A stretch of DNA of 52,682 nucleotides, the filler included, from Bipalium vagum (lineage: Eukaryota), in assembly GCA_037834085.1 (NCBI GenBank). It is 2 parts of 2 records of this genome, joined end to end, with 100 filler letters (N's around TTAATTAATTAA, not from the genome) between each part and the next. Parts side by side here need not be neighbours in the genome. Positions count along the whole stretch, not along the records: positions 23,124 to 52,682 come from JBBMKC010023554.1; 1 more part is not named here. One strand, written 5' to 3'. A program made the translations under genes and the position numbers. A model generated the notes under the pieces. That model searched no databases. It was not told the origin of the DNA and saw only the letters and a program-made list of their open reading frames with translations. Positions 23,124 to 52,019 of this stretch are shown here, piece after piece; within the stretch, counting starts at the first letter, position 1, and each line of letters opens with the position of its first letter.

Positions 23124-23271
23124 GGACAGGGGACCTTGTCAAGATGTATACCCCCGAGGCAGGTAAGTTAGGTAAGTTTTATGTTATTTTCTTTTATTTC
23201 ATCCGGTTCTTGTTTCTTGTTCTGTTTGTGTGTTTGTGGTATGATTGATGGTTTGATGCACTATGGTGATG

Positions 23272-25259: not shown

Positions 25260-27850
25260 ACTTTTCAATACCTCCCTTGTACATCAAAGACATTCGAAAA
25301 AAGTACACAATATCTTGAAAGCTAATCGACTCATCTCTCAACTATCAGGCCAAGGAAATCCATGTAATTCCTTCAAAAAGATTACTGTCTCTACTGATTC
25401 AAAACATTCATTTCTGCGCTGAAAGACCACTCAGCTTTAATATTTTTCAAGGATATCCACATTGTTACATACTGCTACCATTATATTAACTCTCCGGATG
25501 TCATTGTTACCAATCCAATAATATCAAAAGTCTTAGTCTTGAATTCATAAAAACTTATTTGACACTTAAAATGTTTAAAGACAAAACTATGATATTTTTT
25601 CCCTACTTTGACACATTAAAAAATTATTGGGATCTTTTCGTCTGCTATGTTTTGATTGAATCAATATACTGTCTGGATCCAGACCATTATGGCGACGAAA
25701 TGAGTGAACTTTTAAAAATTATCTCCACTTTTCTGACATACTTCCTTCTTGGGCAAATTGTATTTAAAATAACAAAAATAGGACCAGTTCAGAAAATGAG
25801 ATCTCCATCCTAAAGCGGTCCTCTAATATTTGGATATATTTACTCAATTTTTAACAGTAAATCATTAAACCTAATTAACATCAATAAAATCAAAGTAAGA
25901 ACGGCACAGCTCATAAGCAAGCAAATAAAAGATATTAAAGACTCATACGTCCACATGTAAAGGTACAAAACCCGTACATTTACAGAGTACAGCTCGCTGC
26001 CAAACTCCTGGATGACATTAAATAATTAAAATGTTCAAACGATGAAGCTAATAATAAAATTGTAAAATTTATATACGAGATGCGTCCAGTAAAGGAAAAA
26101 CGATTGTTTCTGAAACAATCATCAATAAAAAGACCTGTAACAGATTACAACCTTCGAAAAGTCTCCTTATACAAACCTGTGAGTGCCTTTAAATAATAAT
26201 TGACAAAACAGTAGCTGACTGCAATCCGTTTATACAAAAAATCTACGATTATTATAATAAAAAGTCAATCTCTCCACCTCCAGTTGATTGGCATCATACA
26301 GATCTCAAAAATCTAATAATACAAGGCCATTACTTTGACTTTTATCCACTCTCATCTGATGAAATTCATAGGATAATGAAAGGTGTTCAGAATACCGCAC
26401 CACGTCTGAGTAATATATCTTATTCAGATATAAAATACTGTGATCCGATCTACGAACTTCATCTTTTCTTACTAAACAGCATCTTGGCCAATCACTAAAT
26501 TCCTAAACGATGGAAATCTTTCAGAACACAACTTTTTCCAAAACCAATGAAGCAGGGTCAATATGATGACATAAACTATGACATCCAATAGCTTTTCCTA
26601 CAAAATTTTTGCTTATGCCCTTTATCATCAAATCTCAGGCTGGCTCACCAAAAGTAACCATTTGCATCCATTGCAAAAAAAATTTATAAACTTTCCATAA
26701 ATCAGTCACATAAATATCTCGGTATAGATTTCTGTGAAAAACTTAATTTACCTTCGTTCTCATTATTTTCCGATATCATTCAACAGCTAACCGAAATTGC
26801 AAATAGTATTCTCTACCTCTGGCAAAAATTTCAGGCATATACAATCTTTATCCATAGCAGACTACTTTTTATTTTCGCAACTATTACTTGTCGCCTAAAG
26901 ATCTGAAACACGGAAAAGATGCCATTGAATCAAGTAATAATTAAATCAATTCCTGGCCTTAGTTGTCAGTCATCTATTAAATAGTTGTATTCTTCTCAAA
27001 AGATTGGAGGAGTTGGTCTGGTCATAAATGAATATCATATAAAATCTCTGACGCAATGCTTCCAATTACTGTCCTCTGTTGATGACATCACTGCGAATAT
27101 TTCCATCTCTTCTCTTTGTAATTCGACCAAAATCTCAACAGGTTCTAGATTGTGCTCAACTGAAGATGTTCTGACATGGTTGTATAAAGGTGATAAACAT
27201 TGTCAACTGGTGGACAAAAATTGGAGCTGCTATCTCCCAACTGAAAAATAGGCATTCTATCACCCAATCATTCATATAAATGAAAAACACATTTACCTCA
27301 AATTTACCCAATGCCTTGAACCAGAAGCGAGGCATAAAGGCCTTATCAATCCTGGCGACTCAAAATGCTTATCAAAATTACTTCATACAATGGTACAAAA
27401 CTCATGGAACCACAAGAGTATTGGGTCTTCAAAACTGTCAGCAACACCAATATTTCAGGGATAAAATATCTCTCTCAGCCTGGTATTTTAATAAATGCAA
27501 GGCATGGAAGCACATACAGAGGATGTCGCAGATTCCCCGAATCAGAAGAATCACGAGCATATGTTCTTCTCGGATGTGTGCCTTCAAGAATATTTATTCT
27601 CTCTCGTCACAATTCAATTTAAGATTATCTAACTGAACAACTCTTATCTTACACAGAGGCGATAGTATATGTCAATGCTGAGAGTCAGTAGATTCAATCA
27701 ACACTGCACATTGACCTGCAAATTGAATTCACGAAATCAAAAAAACTAATTTTAATCGATATCAAATGCCCATTTGAGACTGAAAAACATCATCAAAACC
27801 TGGCACAGTACCACGATCTAATAGCTATTCGATAGCTTTTCGACCATGTT
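25260..27850 (+). mobile_element. Heavily decayed NeSL-clade non-LTR retrotransposon (Ulp1, part of RT, CCHC, RLE)
   Basis: IFFPYF..NYWDLFVC..IYCLDP; NTAPRLSNISYSDIK; IPKRWKSFRT; HKYLG; QKFQAYTIFIHSRL; LYSSQKIGGVGL; CRR..ESEESRAYVLLGC..RHNSI; LIDIKCPFE. Collinear with copies C and D. Confidence 0.8.
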
Positions 27851-32559: not shown

Positions 32560-32840
32560 TTTTTCTTTTTATTATTATTAGTATGTATCATTAAAATACT
32601 TTTTGCTTTGAAGGATTTGGTGAATTTGTGGTTCCGTAAGTCCAATCTTCTTTAGAGCGGCGTCGTCGGCTGGGTTCCACGAGCCAACGGAGCGAAAGGT
32701 AAGTGTCAAGAGTGACTTCCATTAAGGATTTACTGTCTAATTATGGAGTAATTCCGGCGTTTTTTGTTTGGTTGTCCTGGCGATTCTTGGCAGTCTTCCA
32801 TTGTATCGTATGGTACCTTAATGTCGAGGATATTGGTAGT
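32560..32840 (-). mobile_element. Copy E: decayed RLE-domain fragment of the same retrotransposon group
   Basis: NILDIKVPYD, then in a shifted frame VGSWNPADDAALKKIGL; matches the C-termini of copies A and D. Confidence 0.8.
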
Positions 32841-33507
32841 TTTGGATTTTAGTTCGTCAAGGGAAATTTTCTCTGTGTAGGGATTGCTTAGTTCAAAAAT
32901 CGCCGGTCTGGAATTTGTTATATGGGCTCTAACGAGTGGAGCATCGAAATGACGGAGAAGTCCTTTTTGAGTGGCTTTATATTGGTATAAATGGTTGTTG
33001 GAGATAATTAGTAATTTATACAATGGTACCACGTTAAGAAGAGGAAAAATTGATATACAATAAATACAATAAAAAATGTGTAAAAAGGCAATATTGAAGC
33101 TATATATAAATTTACAGATGTTGTGATTTTAGAAGAACTAGAGCTTTATACCAGGGAAAACGGTATAAAACTCTAAGGATTGAAATTTATACAGAGGAAG
33201 GAAAAAAGAAACAATTTACAAGGGAGAAAAGGAGTGTACAATCAAGATTTGTACAAGGATAAACAATAATAAATTGATAGTCGTTTTTTTTACCTCCACA
33301 ATTGGTTTTTTGAAATATACAAATGAATATGTATACGATAAGTAATTATTTACATAGTAAGGGTAATTGTGGAGTATAAATATAAATGAAGATACTTAAT
33401 AATAAAGAATAATATATATATATATATTTTTTTTTCCCGACTTTTCAATGGATATTATTTACACAGTTAAAAGTATTTACAGAATTATTTTACAACGATA
33501 AAATGCC

Positions 33508-34285
33508 CTATATTGGTGGGCTTCTGATATGCACTAAGAACATATGGAAAGATTCACATATCGCGGTGTTGATGCTTTGATGGGCGATGTGACTGATGTC
33601 TTTTTCGAGTAGTCCAATTTTCTTCAGTGCAACATCATTTTTGGGGTCCCATGACCTCAAGGATCCAATGTTCAGGACATCAAGGCTGATCTCGTATCTT
33701 GTAGACATGTACATTTCTTGGACGATATTCTGATATTTCACTGCATTCTCCGTGCGATTTCGTTCAAAGTTTTCCAGAGAGTCATATGGCACTTGGACGT
33801 CAAGAATATGGATTTTTTTCTTGTCGTGCCGACGGATTATGATATCTGGTCAAGGTTTGTTGGTATTTCACTCGGAGAGGCATCAACTTCGACGTCGTAA
33901 TTCAGGTCTCTGAGGCAGCTAACAATTTTAAAAAGTACTTTGTTGTGTTTGATTGTTGTGGCATGGCTTTTCGATGGACAATGATTGAGCACATGCGGTT
34001 GACTCTCTGGCTGTGTCCTGCAGTGTCTGCACATGATGTTTCTGGATTTGGCTATGTTGAACGACCGGTAATTTAGGCCTAGGTTGTTGTTTCGGGCCTT
34101 ATATAGAAATTTCCATATCACTAGTGGTTGGTGAAATTTTGTTAATATGGTGTTGGAGTATTTGCTGAGGCTGGAGACTGGTATAATCCGTCCTTGCGAT
34201 TTGTGACTTTTCTGTAAAGTATCTCATGGCTACCGCTTCATGTAAATAGGCCGTGACTTCTTGAATGTTTTCACGGTTGAACGAA
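33508..34285 (-). pseudogene. Copy A CCHC knuckle and restriction-like endonuclease, frameshifted
   Basis: CRHC..ESQPHVLNHC..TIKHN, (R)PDIII..LDVQVPYD and GSLRSWDPKND, spread over ORFs 33837-34121 and 33508-33792. Confidence 0.9.
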
Positions 34286-34325
34286 TTTTGGTCCTGAGAT
34301 AGGCCTCTATCTGGTGGCTGCCTAG

Positions 34326-36692
34326 TCAGCTTTGCTCCAAGTCTGCGGCAGTGAGTGGAATGTCGCAGACGTCGGTTGATGTTGGCATTGTGGCCTTGAT
34401 GTGAGAGCTGATGTGCGAGGGCAAATTTTTTCGGGCAATCGCTTGGCCACAAATGCATCGGTACATAGAGTCCGGAGTGTGTTTGATTTGGTGATTATTG
34501 AGAAGGTGGGTGTCGAACCCACAGGCCTTGCCGTTATTAAAAGTGTATTTATTGTTACAATAGTTACACGTTAGGGAGTTGTAGGCTTTGAAAGTTGCTA
34601 TTGTTTCTGTATTGTCAATTGCTCCTGCGAAGAAATTAATGGCATTTAAATCCATGGAGCCATTACAAGATTCCGCTATGTCTTCCATGTTGATTGTTGG
34701 TTGAGATATCGTTTCATTTAATTCACTTTCAGAATCAAGGTCTGAGAGTGAGTCACAGCCGGGATTGGTAGCGTAAACATCGTGTGGTGTTGCGACAGGT
34801 GCATTGATGGTTTTGAGTGTTGTTTGGATTAGCGGCCGGGCGTTGTTTGAGGATGATTTTCTGGAAGAGGCGACTGATATAATAGATATATCATCGTCAG
34901 AGTTATTTTCATTGAATTGGGTTATCATTGTTTTTCGGCGTTTAAGAGGTTTTCTGGTGACGTGCGGGGATGTTTCGATGGTGTTCGTTTGCATAGTCTG
35001 GGTGCCGAAATCCCGCGTTTCAATCATAGTTTGTGTTTCAACCGTGGATCTGAATATCGGTGGAGGGGGAATGATATCATCATCATCATCATCATCATTT
35101 TTGTCATTGTTTTCTTCCGGTATTGATTCATCAATGACAATGATATCATCCTCTTCCGCTGGTGGAGGTGGAAGATAGTCTTCGTCAATGGAACAAGTCG
35201 GTTCGGCGTCGAGATCGACTTCCATCAATTGGGTTTCCGGCTCTATGATCAATTCTTGAGATGTTTCATTGATCGTTTCGAGAGATTTTATTGGTGTTGT
35301 TTTTTCGTCAGGATTGATGGTAGGCTTGGCAGGATTTTCGTGATTTTTGGTGGAGATTGATTTTTCGGGCGGAGCAAACCCGAAACCTATGATTCCTCTT
35401 TTTTCCATGTCCGGGTTGTACCGGTAATCCACGAGGAGAGGCATATTGCGACGATTTACCTTGATTTCCCGGTACGTCGCCCGGAACATGTTCGATTTTT
35501 GTCCATGTATTGGACGCCAGCCAGCGAAGATCCATCTTTTCTGTCCAATCAGATCTGGCCTTGGACAGTTTTCCCGGTTGTATTTTGGGAAATTGTAATT
35601 GGGAGCCGTTTTTGAGTTATTCGGCCTATGTGTTGGCTCCTTTATGGCATTTTCAGTTGATGGAGTTTCGTTAATTGGTGGATTTTGTTGTTTGATGTTT
35701 GGCATTTTTTCATTTAGGACTTTTTCGGTTGGCTTGGTCTTCTTGTTTTGAGTATTCTGATTCTGGTCTTTGTTAGATTTCATTTTTTCACTTCGTGGCT
35801 TTTGAGGATAGTTTTGCTTACGATTTTGCCCTTTGCTTTGGTTGACTGGCGGCTTCTTCTGCCAGTTTTTCTTCTTTCTATTCACGACGGTCCATCCCTC
35901 TTCGCCTGTGACCGTCACTTTCCTATCCCCGTTGGTGGCCTCGATGGTAAGGCTGGGGCCCTTATACCTATTCTCCGGGATCTTAACTTTTTCTTTAAAC
36001 GCTACTTTCTCGCTCTGCTTAGCGCCTTCTTCTTTGTCTCGCTTAAGCTCATTTCTTAAGTTCTCGATCATCCCTAATAAGTCTTGGATGGTGGCCGATT
36101 TTGAGTGACTGTTGGGTTTTTTTGAGGAATTTTTTGGGCCTGAGTTCTTATTGGCGCCATTATTTTTGCCAGTAGGGGTCGCAGTTGGCCGTGGTTGTTG
36201 GATGGTGGCCCCTACTGGTTCAATTGGGACTAACTCATAGAGCCGCCCATCGGATCCCCTAACAGTCTTGGTTAGCACTTCACAGTACGATGGGGTCAAC
36301 TTATCCTGAACGTAGCATCTAAAGTCTTTATTTGCCCCATCGGCTATTATCTGACATTTAGCCCTGGTGACTAAGGATGCCATGTACAACGCATTATACG
36401 CATTGTGTAAATGTATTTTAGTATAATAAGCTATAATATTCATAAATATATAGGTAAATACTTTTATACATTGAGAGATGATAAAGTAAAATGGGCCAAT
36501 GGGAAGCTGGGGATAAGTGCCAGTTCCCATGGGGAGATTACTCTCCTTTTCACCCCCCCGCGCATAATTGAAACATGAAATAGGATTTTTCCCGAGGGTT
36601 TTGGTAAAAAGTGGAGTTAAATTCAGGGAAAAGACATTGAAAATATGGGGGTGAGGCCCTGGAGCAGATGGTTGGAGGTCAATGCAGACCAT
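34326..36692 (-). CDS. Copy A N-terminal protein (788 aa): basic/disordered region, conserved central domain and two C2H2-like fingers; ends at the UGA-CUAG
   Basis: Long ORF homologous to 41682-44225 and 47443-49551. Fingers CNYC..HLLNNH and CIC..HISSH. Strong protein-like conservation begins at MASLVTR (ATG 36383). Confidence 0.85.
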   Translation of the reverse strand: MVCIDLQPSAPGPHPHIFNVFSLNLTPLFTKTLGKNPISCFNYARGGEKESNLPMGTGTYPQLPIGPFYFIISQCIKVFTYIFMNIIAYYTKIHLHNAYNALYMASLVTRAKCQIIADGANKDFRCYVQDKLTPSYCEVLTKTVRGSDGRLYELVPIEPVGATIQQPRPTATPTGKNNGANKNSGPKNSSKKPNSHSKSATIQDLLGMIENLRNELKRDKEEGAKQSEKVAFKEKVKIPENRYKGPSLTIEATNGDRKVTVTGEEGWTVVNRKKKNWQKKPPVNQSKGQNRKQNYPQKPRSEKMKSNKDQNQNTQNKKTKPTEKVLNEKMPNIKQQNPPINETPSTENAIKEPTHRPNNSKTAPNYNFPKYNRENCPRPDLIGQKRWIFAGWRPIHGQKSNMFRATYREIKVNRRNMPLLVDYRYNPDMEKRGIIGFGFAPPEKSISTKNHENPAKPTINPDEKTTPIKSLETINETSQELIIEPETQLMEVDLDAEPTCSIDEDYLPPPPAEEDDIIVIDESIPEENNDKNDDDDDDDIIPPPPIFRSTVETQTMIETRDFGTQTMQTNTIETSPHVTRKPLKRRKTMITQFNENNSDDDISIISVASSRKSSSNNARPLIQTTLKTINAPVATPHDVYATNPGCDSLSDLDSESELNETISQPTINMEDIAESCNGSMDLNAINFFAGAIDNTETIATFKAYNSLTCNYCNNKYTFNNGKACGFDTHLLNNHQIKHTPDSMYRCICGQAIARKNLPSHISSHIKATMPTSTDVCDIPLTAADLEQS

Positions 36693-36863
36693 CTGGTAAT
36701 TATAGTAATAAAAATTATATAATAGAGTATAAAAACTGCGAATGCGGCGGTCATTAATTGAAAGAGTTCTAAAAATTTTTGAAAATTTAGGCCCAGGAGT
36801 GTTAAAACAGACAATTTTTGAAATTTTAGAACTTTTGATGAGGCGGCGATCAATTTTAGGTGT

Positions 36864-45509: not shown

Positions 45510-45515
45510 GATCAT
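44568..45515 (-). CDS. Copy B proximal leader ORF (315 aa) starting at the ATG inside the U2 fragment
   Basis: ATG 45515 is U2 nt 22-24. The second half matches the leader ORFs of A and C (SPRRDESEAM..AEPWVN..SPRLPCKEASGESCGR). Ends at a small out-of-frame deletion relative to A. Confidence 0.5.
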   Translation of the reverse strand: MIPRVTYSINGGLSNEPSPALFGQLGESPASLQSGTFLQSQYQKYEKKLHLLQKVRKCAKSSCIETFSLDDRGSLYAKSGKISVQKPSFAVFLMTEKMVPTRFPDEASWITANQIRENLGRPSPNSNSSNSGRFPTPDPSPKSPRRDESEAMPRSAVPLAEPWVNCPRRYELQQCRYGSTYYDNQRFSPRLPCKEASGESCGRPNGRGQAELAGGKPTEGNLSNFWLKNQVFQNRNGNSYFCTPFINFIIDTYRFGTKEFIYDEFIPKYTQIFKFFIKIINFLNYKMIKTLNCQFLTNFNILGFKLKPNFYIIRL

Positions 45516-45536
45516 AGCTATGAAGCTAGAAGCGAT
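45501..45536 (-). ncRNA. RNU2: U2 snRNA 5' fragment starting exactly at +1, without the promoter
   Basis: ATCGCTTCTAGCTTCATAGCTATGATC-CCGC-GTGTA; the first 27 nt are identical to the 41304 copy. Confidence 0.85.
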
Positions 45537-47442
45537 TGATTGATTCTAATAACAGATGGTGAGTAGCTCCGTGTACAACCCCAAGATAAGTATAAAGATT
45601 TTCGGGAGAAACTGTTGGGATATTTTCTCCATAGATTGTGACTGTGGAGTTGGTTTTATTTGATAGATATCCACATTTTGATGGACGGAATTTGAGGTGG
45701 ATAGCGTCTGAGAGAGAAGAAATAATGTTGAGCCGTTCTTGGAGGCTTGATTGGCTAGGGGCAATGAGAACAAGGTCATCAGCATAGGCCAAACAAGAGA
45801 AATCATGCCCAAGAGTTTTGAGTTTGGGGGTCATGTTCTCCATTTTTGCGATGATAAAATTTATGCAAAGACAAAAGATTGTCATAGAAAGTGGACAACC
45901 TTGTTTCACGCCCTTATTGATCTTAATATAGCCAGTCTGAAGGTGAAAACACGAGTAGCTGGTGAAATTTTCTGAGTAGATGGCCTTCAGAAGTTCAATG
46001 TGAGTATCCGGAATGCCCATTTTATGAAGCGTAACCCATATGAGTTGGTGAGGGATACTTGGAAAGGCTTCAGAAATATCCAAAAAGCAAATATGGTGTT
46101 CTTTTTTGCTGGTTTTGGTCGACTCGATAATGCCGTTGATAATTGCATTATGTTCTCCACAGCCATTATCGTTGAAGAGGGCTTTCTGATTCCGGTGGAT
46201 AAGAGAATTTTGCTTTATCCATGATAGCATTCTGTTGTTAATGATCAGTGCAAATAATCGGTACGAAGTGTTGAGCACAGCAATGGGCCTCCATGATGAC
46301 ATGAGGTGGGAGTGATGGTCTTTCCCTGGCTTCAAAATTAGACTTGTTTTGAACCTTCTCCATTGCTGTGGGATAATTCGCGAGTTGATGATGTAATTGA
46401 ATAATGCGGACAGAAATTCACCTTCGGGATCAATAAGTTTCCAATCCTGATAATTGATACCATCAAGTCCGGCTGCTGATTTGTTGGAAGATTTCAGGGC
46501 ATCAATCACTTCTAAGGGTGAGATGGTGTCGAAGAGGTTGTTGAAAGGATGATTTGGGAAGTTGAAGAGAAGTGATTGGTTGATTTCTGGTGGGACTTCA
46601 GAGGAAAAATGATTAAAAATATCTTCGATGGTTGGAAAAGCGGTTGGTTTGCTTGATGGGAGGAGAGAGTTGAAGGTGTCCTTTGGATGATTTTCATATT
46701 GTTGCCGGAAATTGAAAGAAGATTTAATCTGGTTCTCCAGGTGTTGATGGGATGGAGTTTTCTTCTTTTTATTCTTCGCAAATCTTGATGGAAAAAGATC
46801 AGCGATTGCATTGCAGGCAGAGTCGAGGGCCTGTGCTGGATCAGCGTTGATTGATTGGAGTTTGCTGATCGATTCTAACAGCAGATGGTGAGTGGTTTTG
46901 CGTGAGCTGTTACGGTCCGGCTTTTTTGCTCTGGCAGCGAGAATGTTATCGACGAGATGTTGGATTTTACTTTTGAGAGCGGAAATGTCTGGGGCATTGA
47001 AGATTGTCGAATTTGCGAGGAAATCCATCGCATATTGGATAATGAAATATCCACAATCAAATCCAGGACCCTGCAGTGGCTGCGAATCGAGAGTGCTTTG
47101 ATCGATCGGGTTAGGATCAAAGGTGCAGCATGTTTTATTAATGACCGTGTTCAAAAGATCAAAAAGATGGAGTTGGTCATCTGCAAGGGTCTGAGAGGCT
47201 GGATCTAGAAGAAATGATTTTTTGGCAACCCGATCAGCCAAGAAGATAAGCCAATGATTGGATTGCCAATGAATTGGCCAAATTATCTTCTGCCAGTTTG
47301 CCATTTTTGTAAATGGGAAGCATTCGTAAAATTCTTTAATTTTACCCTGCGTTAAGGCGACTGCAGGCCCCGGTCGGATGAAAATATGATGATCGTTTTG
47401 GATGTGAGACCGGAGGAATGCTTCAATCTGGTGGCTGCCTAG
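45526..47442 (-). CDS. Copy C Ulp1-like protease and reverse transcriptase, 3'-truncated; in frame with the upstream ORF across TGA 47445-47443
   Basis: 46 sense codons (LGSHQIEAFLRSH..PFTK) precede MANWQK at 47304. Protease NHW/LLDP/QGPGFDCG. RT motifs SAAGLDG, WRPIAV, FLDISEAFPSI, GVKQGCPLS, LAYADDL and YTYLG. Confidence 0.92.
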   Translation of the reverse strand, partial: LGSHQIEAFLRSHIQNDHHIFIRPGPAVALTQGKIKEFYECFPFTKMANWQKIIWPIHWQSNHWLIFLADRVAKKSFLLDPASQTLADDQLHLFDLLNTVINKTCCTFDPNPIDQSTLDSQPLQGPGFDCGYFIIQYAMDFLANSTIFNAPDISALKSKIQHLVDNILAARAKKPDRNSSRKTTHHLLLESISKLQSINADPAQALDSACNAIADLFPSRFAKNKKKKTPSHQHLENQIKSSFNFRQQYENHPKDTFNSLLPSSKPTAFPTIEDIFNHFSSEVPPEINQSLLFNFPNHPFNNLFDTISPLEVIDALKSSNKSAAGLDGINYQDWKLIDPEGEFLSALFNYIINSRIIPQQWRRFKTSLILKPGKDHHSHLMSSWRPIAVLNTSYRLFALIINNRMLSWIKQNSLIHRNQKALFNDNGCGEHNAIINGIIESTKTSKKEHHICFLDISEAFPSIPHQLIWVTLHKMGIPDTHIELLKAIYSENFTSYSCFHLQTGYIKINKGVKQGCPLSMTIFCLCINFIIAKMENMTPKLKTLGHDFSCLAYADDLVLIAPSQSSLQERLNIISSLSDAIHLKFRPSKCGYLSNKTNSTVTIYGENIPTVSPENLYTYLGVVHGATHHLLLESINRF

Positions 47443-50400
47443 TCATGCTGACTCACGGTCCGCCGTGGTCAGTGGGATGTTGGTGATATCGGCATTCGAT
47501 TCAGTTGGTGCTTCGAGGTGAGACAGTAAATGAATCTTGATGGTCTCACGAGGGATTGAGATACCACAGAAGCATCGATAGATGGATGTTGGTGTTGGAT
47601 GGAGGTTGTGCTTCTTTTTAAGATGGTCGTCGAGGCCCCTAGATTTATTCTTTGACCATTGGTATGCTTTCCGGCAGGTATTGCATGCGACCCGATCAAT
47701 GGATGTAAAGATAGCAATGGTTTCGTCGGGTGTGTTTGGTAAAACACCCGCAAAGAAGTTAATGGTGTTGAGATTGATGGTACCATTGCAGGAGTCTTGG
47801 AGCTCCGTGCTTGGTCGGGATATATCAAGTTCGAAGTCATCATCGGTTAGCGAAAAGGAGTCAGGATCAGCTCTAGCTTCAGGTTGTTGTTGTTGTTGCA
47901 GAGGAGGAGGCGGAAGTGGCATGGCACGAATTTCAGCCAGTAGAGGCCTTGCACTGGATGTTGAAGCCCTGGATGACGCAATAGAGATGATGGAGACGTT
48001 ATCATCCGAGTCATCAGGGTTAGTGCGGTTGAAGAATGTTTTTCTCCGCTTAATTGGCTTGCGAGGGGCAATTGGCGAAATTTCTGTTAAAATATCACCC
48101 GTTTGTGTGGCCATCTCCCTCGTCTCCACATCCGTTTGAGTGGCTATCGTGGACCGAAATGCCGGTGGAGGTGGAATGATGTCATCGACATCGTCTTCTT
48201 CTGGTACGGGTTCTTCTACGATGTAAATATCTTCGTCAATATCCGGTGGAGGTGGAAATATATCTTCCTCAATGGAGCAGGTTGGCTCCGCATCAAGGTC
48301 AACCTCCATCTTTTGTGGTTCAGTTGGTATTTCTGTCACAACTGGAACCGTTGGATTGTCAGTTTGTTGATTGGATTGGTCCGGTTCGATAGAGTTTTCT
48401 GTTGCGTTTTGAATGTTGGTGGTGGTTGGTTGCACGGGCTCTTTTTCCTTCGGTTTGCTGATGGTCTTTTCGGGCGGTGCAAAGCCGAAGCCCACAATTT
48501 TGCGCTTCTCCATGTCTGGGTTGTACCGGTAGTCAACCAGGAGGGGCATGTTGCGCCGATTCACTTTAATCTCCCGATATGTCGCCCTGAACATATTGGA
48601 GTTTTGCCCATGTATTGGGCGCCATCCGGTAAAGATCCATCTCTTCTGCCCAATTAAATCCGGCCTTGGGCAGTTTTCCTGATTGTATTTAGGAAAGTTA
48701 TAGTTTGGAGCCGTTTTGGAATTATTCGGCTTATGCGTTGGATCTGGCTTGGTGTTTTTGGATATTTGCTTGGCGTTCGATGGAGTTTTTGGTTTCTCAA
48801 TGTTGGACGGTAGTTGGTTCGAATCCTTCTTGTTTGATTTATTCTTGTTGGATTCTTGCTGTTTATTATTCTTTTGGTGTGATGTGGTTTTATTTGGTTG
48901 TTGATTTTTATTTTGTGGATGCGGCGGATTTTTCGGCCTTTGGTTATCATGCGGCAGTTGTTGATTTTGCCGTTTGTTTTGGTTTTGGTTTTGGTGGTAC
49001 TTGACTGGCGGCTTCTTCTGCCAGTTTTTCTTTTTTCCTCCTACGACGGTCCATCCTTCTTCACCCGTAACCGTCACCTTCCTATCCCCGTTGGTGGCCT
49101 CGATGGTAAGGCTGGGGCCCTTATACTTATCGTCCGTATGTCTAACTTGTTCTTTACCTATTCCTCCAGATTGCCTAGCGCCTGAAGTCCCATCTCGCCT
49201 AACTTCAGCCCTAAGCTCATCAATCATCCGTATCAGGTCTTTAATTTCGGCCGATTTTACGTGACTCAGTTTTTTGTTATTCATTTTTGGGCCTGTGTTC
49301 TTATTGCCGCCTTTATGTTGACCGGCAGGGGTCTGGGTTGGCCGTGGTTGTATCTGCGGACCTGCCGGTTCGAGGGGGACTAGCTCATATAACCGCCCGT
49401 CTATCCCCCTAACAGTCTTGCATACAACCTCGGAATACGATGGGGTTACCTTATCCTGGTTATACACTTGAAAGTTTTTCGTAGCTCCATCGGCTATAAT
49501 TTGACATTTGGTCCTCGTGACCAAAGATGTCAGGAACAACGCATTGTACACGTTGTTTAGATGTATATAATTAATATACGAGGCAAAAATATATATAAAA
49601 ATATTTAAAAATACTTTTATACACTCAAAATATTAATAACTCAAATATAATAACAATAAGAGACGGGCCAATAGGAAGCTGGGGATAAGTGCCAGCTCTC
49701 ATGGGGAGATTGCGCTCCATTACACCCCCCCGCGCATAATTGAAACAGAAATTATGATTTTTCCCGGAGGTTTCTGTGAAAAAGTTCATTAAATTTGGGA
49801 AAAAATGAATAAATTTATGGGGTTGTAGCCCTGGGAGAGATGGCTGGGAGTCAGTGCAGTCCATCTGGGTATTTTTATAATAAAACATATTAAATATACG
49901 TTAAGAAGACTGCAATTGCGGCGGTCATTGGTCATTGATTTGTTAAAAAGTTTAAATTTTTTAAGGTGGAAAAGGCCAAAAGTCATGGTTTTTAAATTTG
50001 GATATCCTTGCATCTGGCGGCGATCAATTTTAGATATTAAACAATTAAGAAAGAGGATCGTCCGGCCTTTAATTTGATGTAAGATAAGCTCTGGGAGAAA
50101 ATAATTGAGAGTGTTGGAGACAAGCAAAGATTTAGAAAATGTAAGGAAAAACTTAGTTAGAAATTTACTCAAATTTCTAACTAAAGTGATGGTTTTAGAT
50201 TGTGCGTAACGTTTTAACAGAGCGATGGAAAAAGCTCGGGGAGGACTTATACGAAAGAGCACCGTTGAAATTGTACTAAATAGTACAATTTCGGTCTTGC
50301 GGATAACGGTGGAGGCCTCAGAAGTCCAAACAACAGAGATGGATTTACCCAGAGATATTAAATTGTTGTTTAAGTGTAAATTTAAATATTTTTGAGACGC

Positions 50401-51848
50401 AATATCTCTGGGTAATCTTATTCAAAAAATAAGGTGGAAGTATCATATAATAGAGAAAAAAATTCTCTATTATATGATACGAGAATTTTGGGCTAAAACT
50501 CAAAATTAAAAATTTATAAAAATTTTTGTTATAACCAGAATTTAAATATGCGTTGTTAGGCGCACATTCAAGTAGGTTAAAATGGCCTAAATAAAAAACC
50601 CAATTATTATAATAAAGACCGCACGCATTACAGGCTTCTATTATAATATAAATAATGCCAAACTTTAGCTTCAATTTGGCACTAAGAACGTTAAATTCAG
50701 ATAAAAATTGACAAAATAAATTTTTTGCCATTTTAAAATTAAAAATCTTAGTTATTTTGAGTGAAATCTCAAAAATTGGGCTATATCTGGTGGTAAATTC
50801 ATCATAGATGAATTCCTTGGTGCCAAATTGATATAAATTTAATATGAAAACAAATTGGGGGGTATTAAAATTAAAATCTTTACTTAAAATTTGGAAAATT
50901 CGATTTTTGTGACAACACTTAACTAAATTACCTCCGGTTGGCTTTCTACCGGCCAACTCGGCTTGCCCACGGCCGTTGGAACGACCGCAGGACTCCCCAG
51001 ATGCTTCCTTACAGGGAAGCCGGGGTGAGCAATATTGTAAGTCGAAAAATGTCGACCCATAGCGGCTCATCCATCCCCTGTCACTGTCAACACGATTTAC
51101 CCACGGTTCCGCGAGTGGCACCGCGGATTTGGGCATTGCCTCGGAATCGTCTCGTCGAGGACTTTCCATTGGTAGGCCGGGCAGTTGGATCCGACCAGTA
51201 TTCGCATTTTTCATAATTTCGACCGAAATTGTTTCGCCTTTTTTGCATTGGCGAACTTTGGCATTGCGTAAATGTTTGAATTTCAGTCCGAATTTTGCAT
51301 CTGATGTATCATTTGGAAGATCTCGTCGAGATCTATAAAGTGCTGTGACTTTATTTGGAATCGTAGCCGAATTCGTAGAATGGTCATTGATCGAAGTTCT
51401 GCATATGAAAGTGCGGTTGAAATTCTGGAGGAGTTTGAAATCCTCCAGAGATCTTGGGCTTCTTCGGATTGGAGCCGTCAGGATATCAAATTAATCGTCT
51501 TTGGAAGAGGCATCTGATGGTACCTCGCTTGACACCATAGCTGGAGAAATGGTGGAGCTGATCTTCGGCATGGAGGCGCCATCTTGGCATCCATCTTGGA
51601 TGGCCGATCTTTTCCTGGTAGAGCTGGGAACGGTTTTAAAATGAATGGTGGATGAAACTTTACCAGTTTTTGTGTTGTGTAAACCCAATGGGCAAACCAC
51701 AACACCAATTTTTTTCACATATTCGGAATTTGAGCAGAAACATGGCGGTTGCCATGCTGGAGTTCCCTCGGAATTCGAAGAGGTATCATAAATATTTCCT
51801 TTCATTTGGCTTTGGGATTGACCAAGAAGTGAACAGAGCTTTTTTTTT
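45565..51848 (-). mobile_element. Copy C: longest NeSL/Utopia-like element, 3'-truncated at the end of RT
   Basis: Leader, N-terminal ORF, UGA-CUAG, protease and RT occur in order directly downstream of a U2 fragment that retains its promoter. Confidence 0.92.
47443..49551 (-). CDS. Copy C N-terminal protein (702 aa) with two C2H2-like fingers
   Basis: Homologous to A and B. Fingers CNTC..HLKKKH and CFC..HLLSH. CTG at 49533 aligns with the ATG of A and B. Confidence 0.85.
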   Translation of the reverse strand: MYNALFLTSLVTRTKCQIIADGATKNFQVYNQDKVTPSYSEVVCKTVRGIDGRLYELVPLEPAGPQIQPRPTQTPAGQHKGGNKNTGPKMNNKKLSHVKSAEIKDLIRMIDELRAEVRRDGTSGARQSGGIGKEQVRHTDDKYKGPSLTIEATNGDRKVTVTGEEGWTVVGGKKKNWQKKPPVKYHQNQNQNKRQNQQLPHDNQRPKNPPHPQNKNQQPNKTTSHQKNNKQQESNKNKSNKKDSNQLPSNIEKPKTPSNAKQISKNTKPDPTHKPNNSKTAPNYNFPKYNQENCPRPDLIGQKRWIFTGWRPIHGQNSNMFRATYREIKVNRRNMPLLVDYRYNPDMEKRKIVGFGFAPPEKTISKPKEKEPVQPTTTNIQNATENSIEPDQSNQQTDNPTVPVVTEIPTEPQKMEVDLDAEPTCSIEEDIFPPPPDIDEDIYIVEEPVPEEDDVDDIIPPPPAFRSTIATQTDVETREMATQTGDILTEISPIAPRKPIKRRKTFFNRTNPDDSDDNVSIISIASSRASTSSARPLLAEIRAMPLPPPPLQQQQQPEARADPDSFSLTDDDFELDISRPSTELQDSCNGTINLNTINFFAGVLPNTPDETIAIFTSIDRVACNTCRKAYQWSKNKSRGLDDHLKKKHNLHPTPTSIYRCFCGISIPRETIKIHLLSHLEAPTESNADITNIPLTTADRESA

Positions 51849-51853
51849 ATCAT
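49625..51853 (-). pseudogene. Copy C leader frame, broken by one TAA and several frameshifts
   Basis: ORF pieces 51491-51904, 50345-51214, 49789-50262 and 49625-49888 match the A and B leader translation in order. The first two are in the same frame, separated by TAA 51493 and 92 sense codons. Confidence 0.55.
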
Positions 51854-51874
51854 AGCTATGAAGCTAGAAGCGAT
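51849..51874 (-). ncRNA. RNU2: U2 snRNA 5' fragment (nt 1-26) at the head of copy C
   Basis: ATCGCTTCTAGCTTCATAGCTATGAT, followed by A9-GC-TCTGTTC. Confidence 0.85.
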
Positions 51875-51990
51875 AAAAAAGAGGAGGGAGCGACCGCGGG
51901 ACATGCCGTGAACATAGCCATGTCTAGGGTTTTTTATGTAACATTTAAAAATTGAATATTTGACGATAAAAAGTGAAAAAACGACGTTTC
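51875..51990 (-). promoter_or_regulatory. Putative U2 promoter region, second copy
   Basis: Near-identical to 41305-41420 (GAGGAGGGAGCGA.CGCGGGACA.GCCGTG..TAGGGTTTTTT..AAAAGTGAAAAAACGACGTTT). Confidence 0.7.
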
Positions 51991-52019
51991 TATGTTTATT
52001 TGCGTTGAGATTTCGATAA

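Follow-up and report, generated by a model that had tools for sequence, protein, structure and literature searches.

The Utopia elements are retrotransposons without long terminal repeats (non-LTR) of the NeSL group that specifically target the genes of U2 small nuclear RNA (snRNA) (Kojima and Jurka 2015, PMC4640811). They combine one to three N-terminal zinc fingers with a reverse transcriptase (RT), a C-terminal finger and a restriction-like endonuclease; the U2 genes that they disrupt lack about the first 38 nucleotides (nt) and outnumber the intact ones, element–element junctions occur, and several families share an array (PMC4640811). The same publication is silent on promoter use, start codon and phase. 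SLACS, CZAR, CRE and NeSL-1 also carry a restriction-like endonuclease and lie inside spliced-leader genes, which are small RNA genes transcribed by RNA polymerase II (Pol II), and SLACS transcription is reported to start at +1 of the interrupted gene (PMC3447711). How translation starts in endonuclease-bearing elements with a single open reading frame (ORF), such as R2, is a long-standing open question. R2 RNA is a Pol I co-transcript that is trimmed by a hepatitis delta virus (HDV)-like ribozyme. Synthesis of the R2 protein needs no methionine and follows a mechanism that is not understood; the one long ORF extends open well beyond any required methionine on the upstream side, the element is co-transcribed with the host gene, and its 5′ RNA is structured (PMC13580325). 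Here we describe a 52,682-nt stretch of Bipalium vagum DNA (assembly GCA_037834085.1; two parts joined by filler, positions 23,124 to 52,682 being from JBBMKC010023554.1), hereafter the window, which appears to hold a nested array of restriction-like-endonuclease elements within variant U2 genes. On balance we favor the view that these Utopia-type elements start their RNA at U2 +1 and translate a long leader from an AUG that lies in the U2 fragment itself.

The minus strand of the window has three occurrences of a 26-nt head, ATCGCTTCTAGCTTCATAGCTATGAT, at 51874-51849 (copy C), 45536-45511 (copy B) and 41304-41279 (copy D); chance alone would produce none. The head corresponds to the 5′ end of a U2-like snRNA with ATG at nt 22-24, and this is the sole AUG of the U2 head and the first AUG of the chimeric RNA. 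In copy C, the AUG (51853-51851) opens MIKKKLCSLLGQ.. (MIKKK..) and the frame stops after 120 codons at 51493-51491, beyond which it is open again until a stop at 50347-50345. In copy B, it opens MIPRVTYS.., which continues for 315 codons. The U2-AUG frame of the 5′-truncated copy D stops after 12 codons, and the real frame of D is a different one. Location and translation of the heads thus bear out the sequence-only reading from which this analysis started, which had placed an AUG at nt 22-24 of all three heads, described the B and C frames, allowed the C leader one stop (51493-51491 is indeed the only one before 50347-50345) and taken the AUG to be out of frame in D. That reading had also regarded the head of copy A as overwritten by D, which has to be revised. 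The first part of copy A is U2-like and matches nt ∼41-60 of a long head seen at another locus of the assembly (L039; other loci are numbered likewise), which places D in the usual target site (nt 36/41) within A's own long U2-like head.

The coding regions identify the elements. Copy C (51874-45537) encodes an Ulp1-like protease (PF02902, Peptidase_C48) and an RT (PF00078, RVT_1, 1.9e-30) and is cut off after the RT motif YLGV. The ORF of copy D contains the end of an RT, a CCHC finger (C..C..H....C) and a restriction-like endonuclease (RPD..D.K), the same motifs being present in L046. Two C2H2-like fingers precede the protease position in C and A and are common to L087 and to a separate Utopia-like subfamily, family ii, whose finger region is 33% identical to that of C. 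The 5′ junctions of the elements fall at U2 nt 26-37, and their 3′ flanks are variant U2 from nt 40-41 (L005-L007, L010-L012) or from canonical nt 37 (L004, L013). The order of RT, CCHC finger and endonuclease, the fixed U2 site and the N-terminal zinc fingers, one to three in number, are those of Utopia, and we accordingly class the elements as Utopia-type non-LTR retrotransposons, a placement made by architecture and target site. The excess of disrupted over intact U2 genes, the element–element junctions and the presence of several families in one array are also shared with the published Utopia loci. The present elements differ from these in occupying a diverged paralogue of U2, which has ATG and in which the branch-site box is altered, in having a leader of 1-2 kb that is open without being constrained, in the in-frame UGA that precedes the protease, and in the presence of the protease itself, which PMC4640811 reports from no elements other than NeSL and a Trichinella family. 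The protease is thus a point of likeness to the NeSL families, and the location inside a small Pol II RNA gene is one to SLACS, CZAR, CRE and NeSL-1, which differ in that their target is the spliced-leader gene. A search for RT relatives in other species gave one match only, a metagenome protein with 36% identity on a 3.5-kb contig that lacks its 5′ end. For the zinc-finger ORF (ORFa), no relative of similar length was found in other species, longer or shorter kin being outside this search. Spliced-leader trans-splicing was considered as the origin of the common 5′ head and ruled out because the junction position varies, from nt 26 to 58.

A search of the whole assembly (440 Mb in 272,664 contigs, and so highly fragmented) with the Rfam U2 model revealed two types of U2. 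The canonical type (L001, L002; 184 bits) reads GGCTAAGATCAAAGTGTAGTATCTG, with AAG at nt 22-24 as in human and the branch-site box GTAGTA retained; a pattern search of the assembly finds three canonical heads in total, each within an intact gene. The variant type reads AGCTATGATCAAAAGTGTAAGAACTG, with ATG for AAG, GTAAGA for GTAGTA and a compensated stem-loop I. At least 88 variant heads are present within two mismatches, of which 67 non-redundant ones form the readable sample, and L003 alone among the 67 is a complete variant U2 (120 bits, with the overall fold recognised). Two features expected of a functional U2, the GUAGUA box and the AA bulge of U2/U6 helix I, are both retained by the canonical copies and are GUAAGA and AU in the variant. 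All of the element junctions studied are in variant U2, and a few heads carry AAG instead of ATG. The ATG-bearing U2 is a diverged, AT-rich paralogue family, nearly all of which is occupied by insertions. No common repeats or element homology were found between the canonical and the element contigs; the canonical ones are short, with a GC content of 44-51% as against 31-38%, and may not be from the same organism.

Promoters and transcript starts were compared among the 66 heads for which 30 nt or more of upstream sequence are available. Sixteen of these share a conserved upstream region with the motif CCCGCGCTCGCTCCCTCCTC and a T-run, and the regions upstream of the C and D/A heads are 90% identical across ∼120 nt. 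The remaining 50 heads are preceded by unrelated sequence, yet their homology starts exactly at U2 nt 1. Variation confined to nt 1-3 is found in 15 of these 50 (11 of the 50 lie in a larger repeat) and in none of the 16 promoter-linked heads. Copy B, located inside the RT of C, is a promoter-less copy of this kind. The extreme 5′ end of such copies consists of U2 nt 1-26/37, which indicates that the template RNA starts at U2 +1. A transcript start at this position, with a promoter that belongs to U2, is well supported by these junctions; the shared upstream region is presumably that promoter, and the RNA would be capped. The reported start of SLACS transcripts at +1 of their host gene provides a precedent (PMC3447711). 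The earlier proposal that the element takes promoter, cap and start codon from U2 can therefore be kept for the promoter and transcript start, given the 50 heads that begin at nt 1, and in part, by comparison, for the use of the AUG. Three promoter-linked copies (L033, L040 and L057) have one common 5′-truncated junction in the post-RT region, and the phase of their U2 AUG is that of the endonuclease ORF; this unit was either amplified within the array or represents a persisting truncated lineage.

Stop-free frames of about 200-600 codons begin at the U2 AUG in five leader families that have different junctions (Table 1). Copy A constitutes a sixth by inference, since its U2-like head is read in the phase of L039. 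The head of C is 12 nt shorter than the L039 type and therefore still in phase. Long head-adjacent frames in another phase are few, namely that of L037, where a run contains one T more than in its kin, and those of the 5′-truncated copies D and L049. When only lineages with an intact leader are counted, 4-5 of 4-5 are in phase (P 0.004-0.012), a selection that is not fully independent of the result.

The leaders themselves are kept open. Copy A has one frame of 601 codons, a single stop that is private to A, and 845 codons more, and in copy B a short stretch is disrupted but the phase before it is also the phase after it. Copy C changes phase near 50360, where a 2-nt difference in length sets it, and it alone, apart from A and B; the single stop in its leader is likewise C-private. 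Over nt 960-1520 of element C, there are no stops in the U2-AUG phase of A, B or C, compared with 12-25 in the other two phases. Placing the observed substitutions between C and A at random over nt 100-1520 predicts ∼15 stops, where 0-1 are observed (0/5000 trials), and the same randomisation gives P 0.007-0.02 for the lack of stops in the leader upstream of the RNA module described below. Stops are similarly scarce in the leaders of L074, L084, L034, L024 and L062 and in the B/L038 leaders (P <0.0003 to 0.02), and three pairs (L074/L084, L074 and the second head of L034, and B/L038), which are 80-91% identical over 750-1020 nt, are free of gapped codons. By contrast with this openness, omega in A is 0.55-1.5 over the first ∼720 codons and falls to 0.13-0.25 from about window position 36450. 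Because the leader is open while omega is near-neutral, it is likely to be translated, or must stay translatable, with no conservation of the peptide. The frame thus appears to be under selection to remain open right up to the U2 head. That the long leader stays open because U2 supplies its AUG had been suggested from the start; the selected openness is upheld here, and for the AUG as its cause, as for use of the AUG in general, support comes from comparison only.

Could the common phase be due to luck, and the openness to young copies or a collapsed assembly? The independent junction types are few, four of them are out of phase, and the assembly is in a great many pieces, all of which would favor such an explanation. 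However, the compared leaders differ by 11-25% and are still without stops, and five or six unrelated leader sequences have a common phase. We regard chance or artefact as very improbable and already disfavored.

The leaders also contain covarying RNA helices. A module of ∼100 nt with three hairpins is present in B (44842-44955), C (50916-51029), A (37723-37836), L010, L037 and L048 and is common to leader families that are not otherwise related; compensatory changes are seen at nine of its 32 pairs. The module could serve to bind a protein or to recruit ribosomes. It matches no Rfam family, and an HDV-like or other known ribozyme was likewise not found in the leader by Rfam comparison, including when the module was scanned alone. 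Apparent CCAAT boxes in family ii were considered as an internal promoter and ruled out, the "boxes" pairing with one another and covarying.

A frame that is open from U2 nt 1, host co-transcription and structured 5′ RNA recall R2, and it is conceivable, though distinctly unlikely in our judgment, that translation here begins in the R2 manner, by a methionine-independent start at some point of the leader or the head rather than at the U2 AUG in particular. Against this, the context of the U2 AUG is usable (G at -3, A at +4), all lineages whose leader is intact have this AUG in phase, and the RNA here would be a capped Pol II product rather than a Pol I product. The elements differ from R2 also in that no ribozyme family is matched and in that a fragment of the host gene remains on the copied RNA.

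The reading that we favor would then be as follows. Ribosomes would start at the U2 AUG and translate through a structured leader of 1-2 kb. In the family of A, B and C, the leader frame would run on into the constrained ORFa with its zinc fingers and then, probably by read-through, past a conserved in-frame UGA into the protease, RT and endonuclease. This TGA is followed by CTA or CTC and lies between the zinc-finger ORF and the protease-RT, with equal phase on both sides, in five copies (C, 47445-47443; A, 34328-34326; L050; L074; L087:237-239), among which are a distant subfamily and the 36%-identical metagenome relative. It looks like a programmed read-through of the gag-pol kind, although we know of no UGA read-through in this class of element. 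In family ii, the leader frame would end at the AUG of the main ORF, an arrangement that fits termination-reinitiation or a slip on a run of A8-9. Insertions of an out-of-frame junction type would be dead on arrival or would have moved only in trans.

Several observations weigh against this reading. The sequence-only reading had stated that the U2 of this organism reads ATG, which is not correct as worded: the canonical U2 genes have AAG, and ATG is confined to the diverged paralogue. The ATG is found also on the heads of a non-coding family resembling short interspersed nuclear elements (SINEs), and hence belongs to variant U2 and not to the coding elements. Promoters of the snRNA type are coupled to 3′-box processing and are poor producers of long mRNAs. 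In a B-like cluster with six junction types, where the AUG lies 39, 39, 26, 31 and 31 nt before a common landmark and L050 is one nt off L056, only two of the six are in phase, L031, L041/L045, L061 and L050 being out of phase; when all junction types are weighted equally, 6/10 are in phase (P about 0.08). The four out-of-phase types are all decayed and all without promoter.

The internal ATGs are the remaining difficulty. At the place where omega drops, a conserved ATG (MTSLVTRTKCQ.., MTSLVTRTKCQIIADGA..) is present in four of five copies, namely A (36383-36381), B (43487-43485, within its 907-codon frame), L050 and a copy in L046, and it could be the real start of the A/B/C family. Family ii has a conserved ATG in another phase, and the U2-AUG frame (343-366 codons) stops 5-9 nt short of it in L084 and L024 and overlaps it in L074; this ATG (ATGGCC..) comes after the A8-9 run, and the U2 AUG would here open an upstream ORF that delivers ribosomes, and would not start the polyprotein. 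An alternative that we consider unlikely is therefore that the elements use these start codons of their own, MTSLVTR.. in A/B/C and ATGGCC.. in family ii, reached by an internal ribosome entry site or by shunting, the U2 AUG being incidental. The position of the first ATG at the onset of protein-level constraint, the second being in a different frame from the leader, and the covarying helices in the leaders all speak for it. It would, however, leave unexplained why 1-2 kb in the U2-AUG phase are without stops or frame-breaking indels in several families, copy C has CTG at the codon in question, and ribosomes that scan from a capped end would not normally pass a first AUG at a distance of 21 nt.

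Initiation at the U2 AUG, if correct, allows a broader proposal, which we offer tentatively and with more doubt than confidence. At least five Utopia-like lineages and a SINE may use the diverged U2 array as their dedicated launch pad and receive from it promoter, cap site and, through a change from AAG to AUG that the working U2 genes lack, a start codon, while an unconstrained leader ORF carries ribosomes through structured RNA to the enzyme ORF. To our knowledge, no host-derived start codon has been described for SLACS, CZAR, CRE or NeSL-1, and we know of no earlier case in which a fragment of a host gene provides the first AUG; the remainder of the system is a variant of Utopia. A relative that occupies a Pol II snRNA gene would offer a readable solution to the question of how R2 and similar elements start translation, with a retained host fragment that contains the first AUG and 1-2 kb kept open behind it. 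The parasite would in that case exploit, and possibly reshape, a redundant copy of an essential RNA gene.

Table 1. Positions of features in the window, and lengths of the frames that open at the U2 AUG in the window and at other loci
Feature	Position	Strand	Remarks
Promoter-like region upstream of the C head	51875..51996	-	90% identical to 41305-41427; promoter function predicted
Variant U2 nt 1-26, head of C	51849..51874	-	AUG 51853-51851
C leader	50348..51848	-	A9 filler, then ∼1.5 kb open in the U2-AUG frame; one C-private stop, 51493-51491
Structured RNA module in C leader	50916..51029	-	Covariation; also B 44842-44955, A 37723-37836
C, rest of unconstrained frame and constrained ORFa	47446..50347	-	Two C2H2-like fingers at 47518-47685
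Conserved in-frame TGA, then CTA, between C ORFa and protease-RT	47443..47445	-	
C, Ulp1-like protease (PF02902) and RT (PF00078)	45529..47442	-	Ends after YLGV
Variant U2 nt 1-26, head of B	45511..45536	-	Without promoter; abuts C RT; AUG 45515-45513
B body	41699..45510	-	315-codon leader, disrupted stretch 44570-44406, then 907 codons in the same frame
Variant U2 head, originally A's, split by D	41279..41304	-	Promoter-like upstream region (41305-41427); AUG 41283-41281; U2 to nt 36 (41269)
D, 5′-truncated	38657..41268	-	RT end, CCHC, endonuclease (RPD..D.K), 3′ untranslated region ending in AAATT repeats; out of frame with U2 AUG
A	34329..38655	-	U2-like nt ∼41-60, 601 open codons, A-private stop 36866-36864, 845 codons
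A past its TGA	33511..34325	-	Post-RT, CCHC and endonuclease part, 42-45% identical to D's
Frame of L039			501+ codons from U2 AUG (runs off contig)
Frame of L038 (B-type, promoter-linked)			393 codons from U2 AUG
Frame of L074			359 codons from U2 AUG
Frame of L084			336 codons from U2 AUG
Frame of B			315 codons from U2 AUG
Frame of L062			293+ codons from U2 AUG (runs off contig)
Frame of L034			208 codons from U2 AUG
Frame of C			120 + 381 codons from U2 AUG

Two further groups of heads were seen among the variant loci. In the SINE-like family (∼420 nt; L016, L017, L030, L052, L060, L069), the head derives from variant U2 nt 1-60 and is internally deleted, the element ends in an A-run, and some of the heads carry AAG and not ATG. 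Eleven sub-variant heads (..CACAGCTATGAC) lie in a larger repeat (L053, L058, L059, L065, L067, L072, L073, L078-L082); these CACAGCTATGAC heads have a conserved upstream TGCCCAGGGCCC, and the sequence downstream of them is AT-rich and without a long ORF.

Within the window, copy A is without protease and RT, and copy B is 3′ truncated. A U6 match at 41632-41736 on the plus strand (62 bits) consists of U6 in its first ∼65 nt and of the antisense of B in the remainder, and B therefore ends against an inverted, truncated U6 fragment. The final ∼30 nt of C before the B head (45537-45573) encode THHLLLESI, a peptide that is found also ∼440 codons earlier (about 46870) in the protease-RT frame of C; the repeat may be a template-switching trace from the insertion of B. 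Elsewhere along the contig, at 26226-27131 on the plus strand and at 32614-32843 on the minus strand, there are pieces of further genes for RT and endonuclease, with 25-45% identity to C and D.
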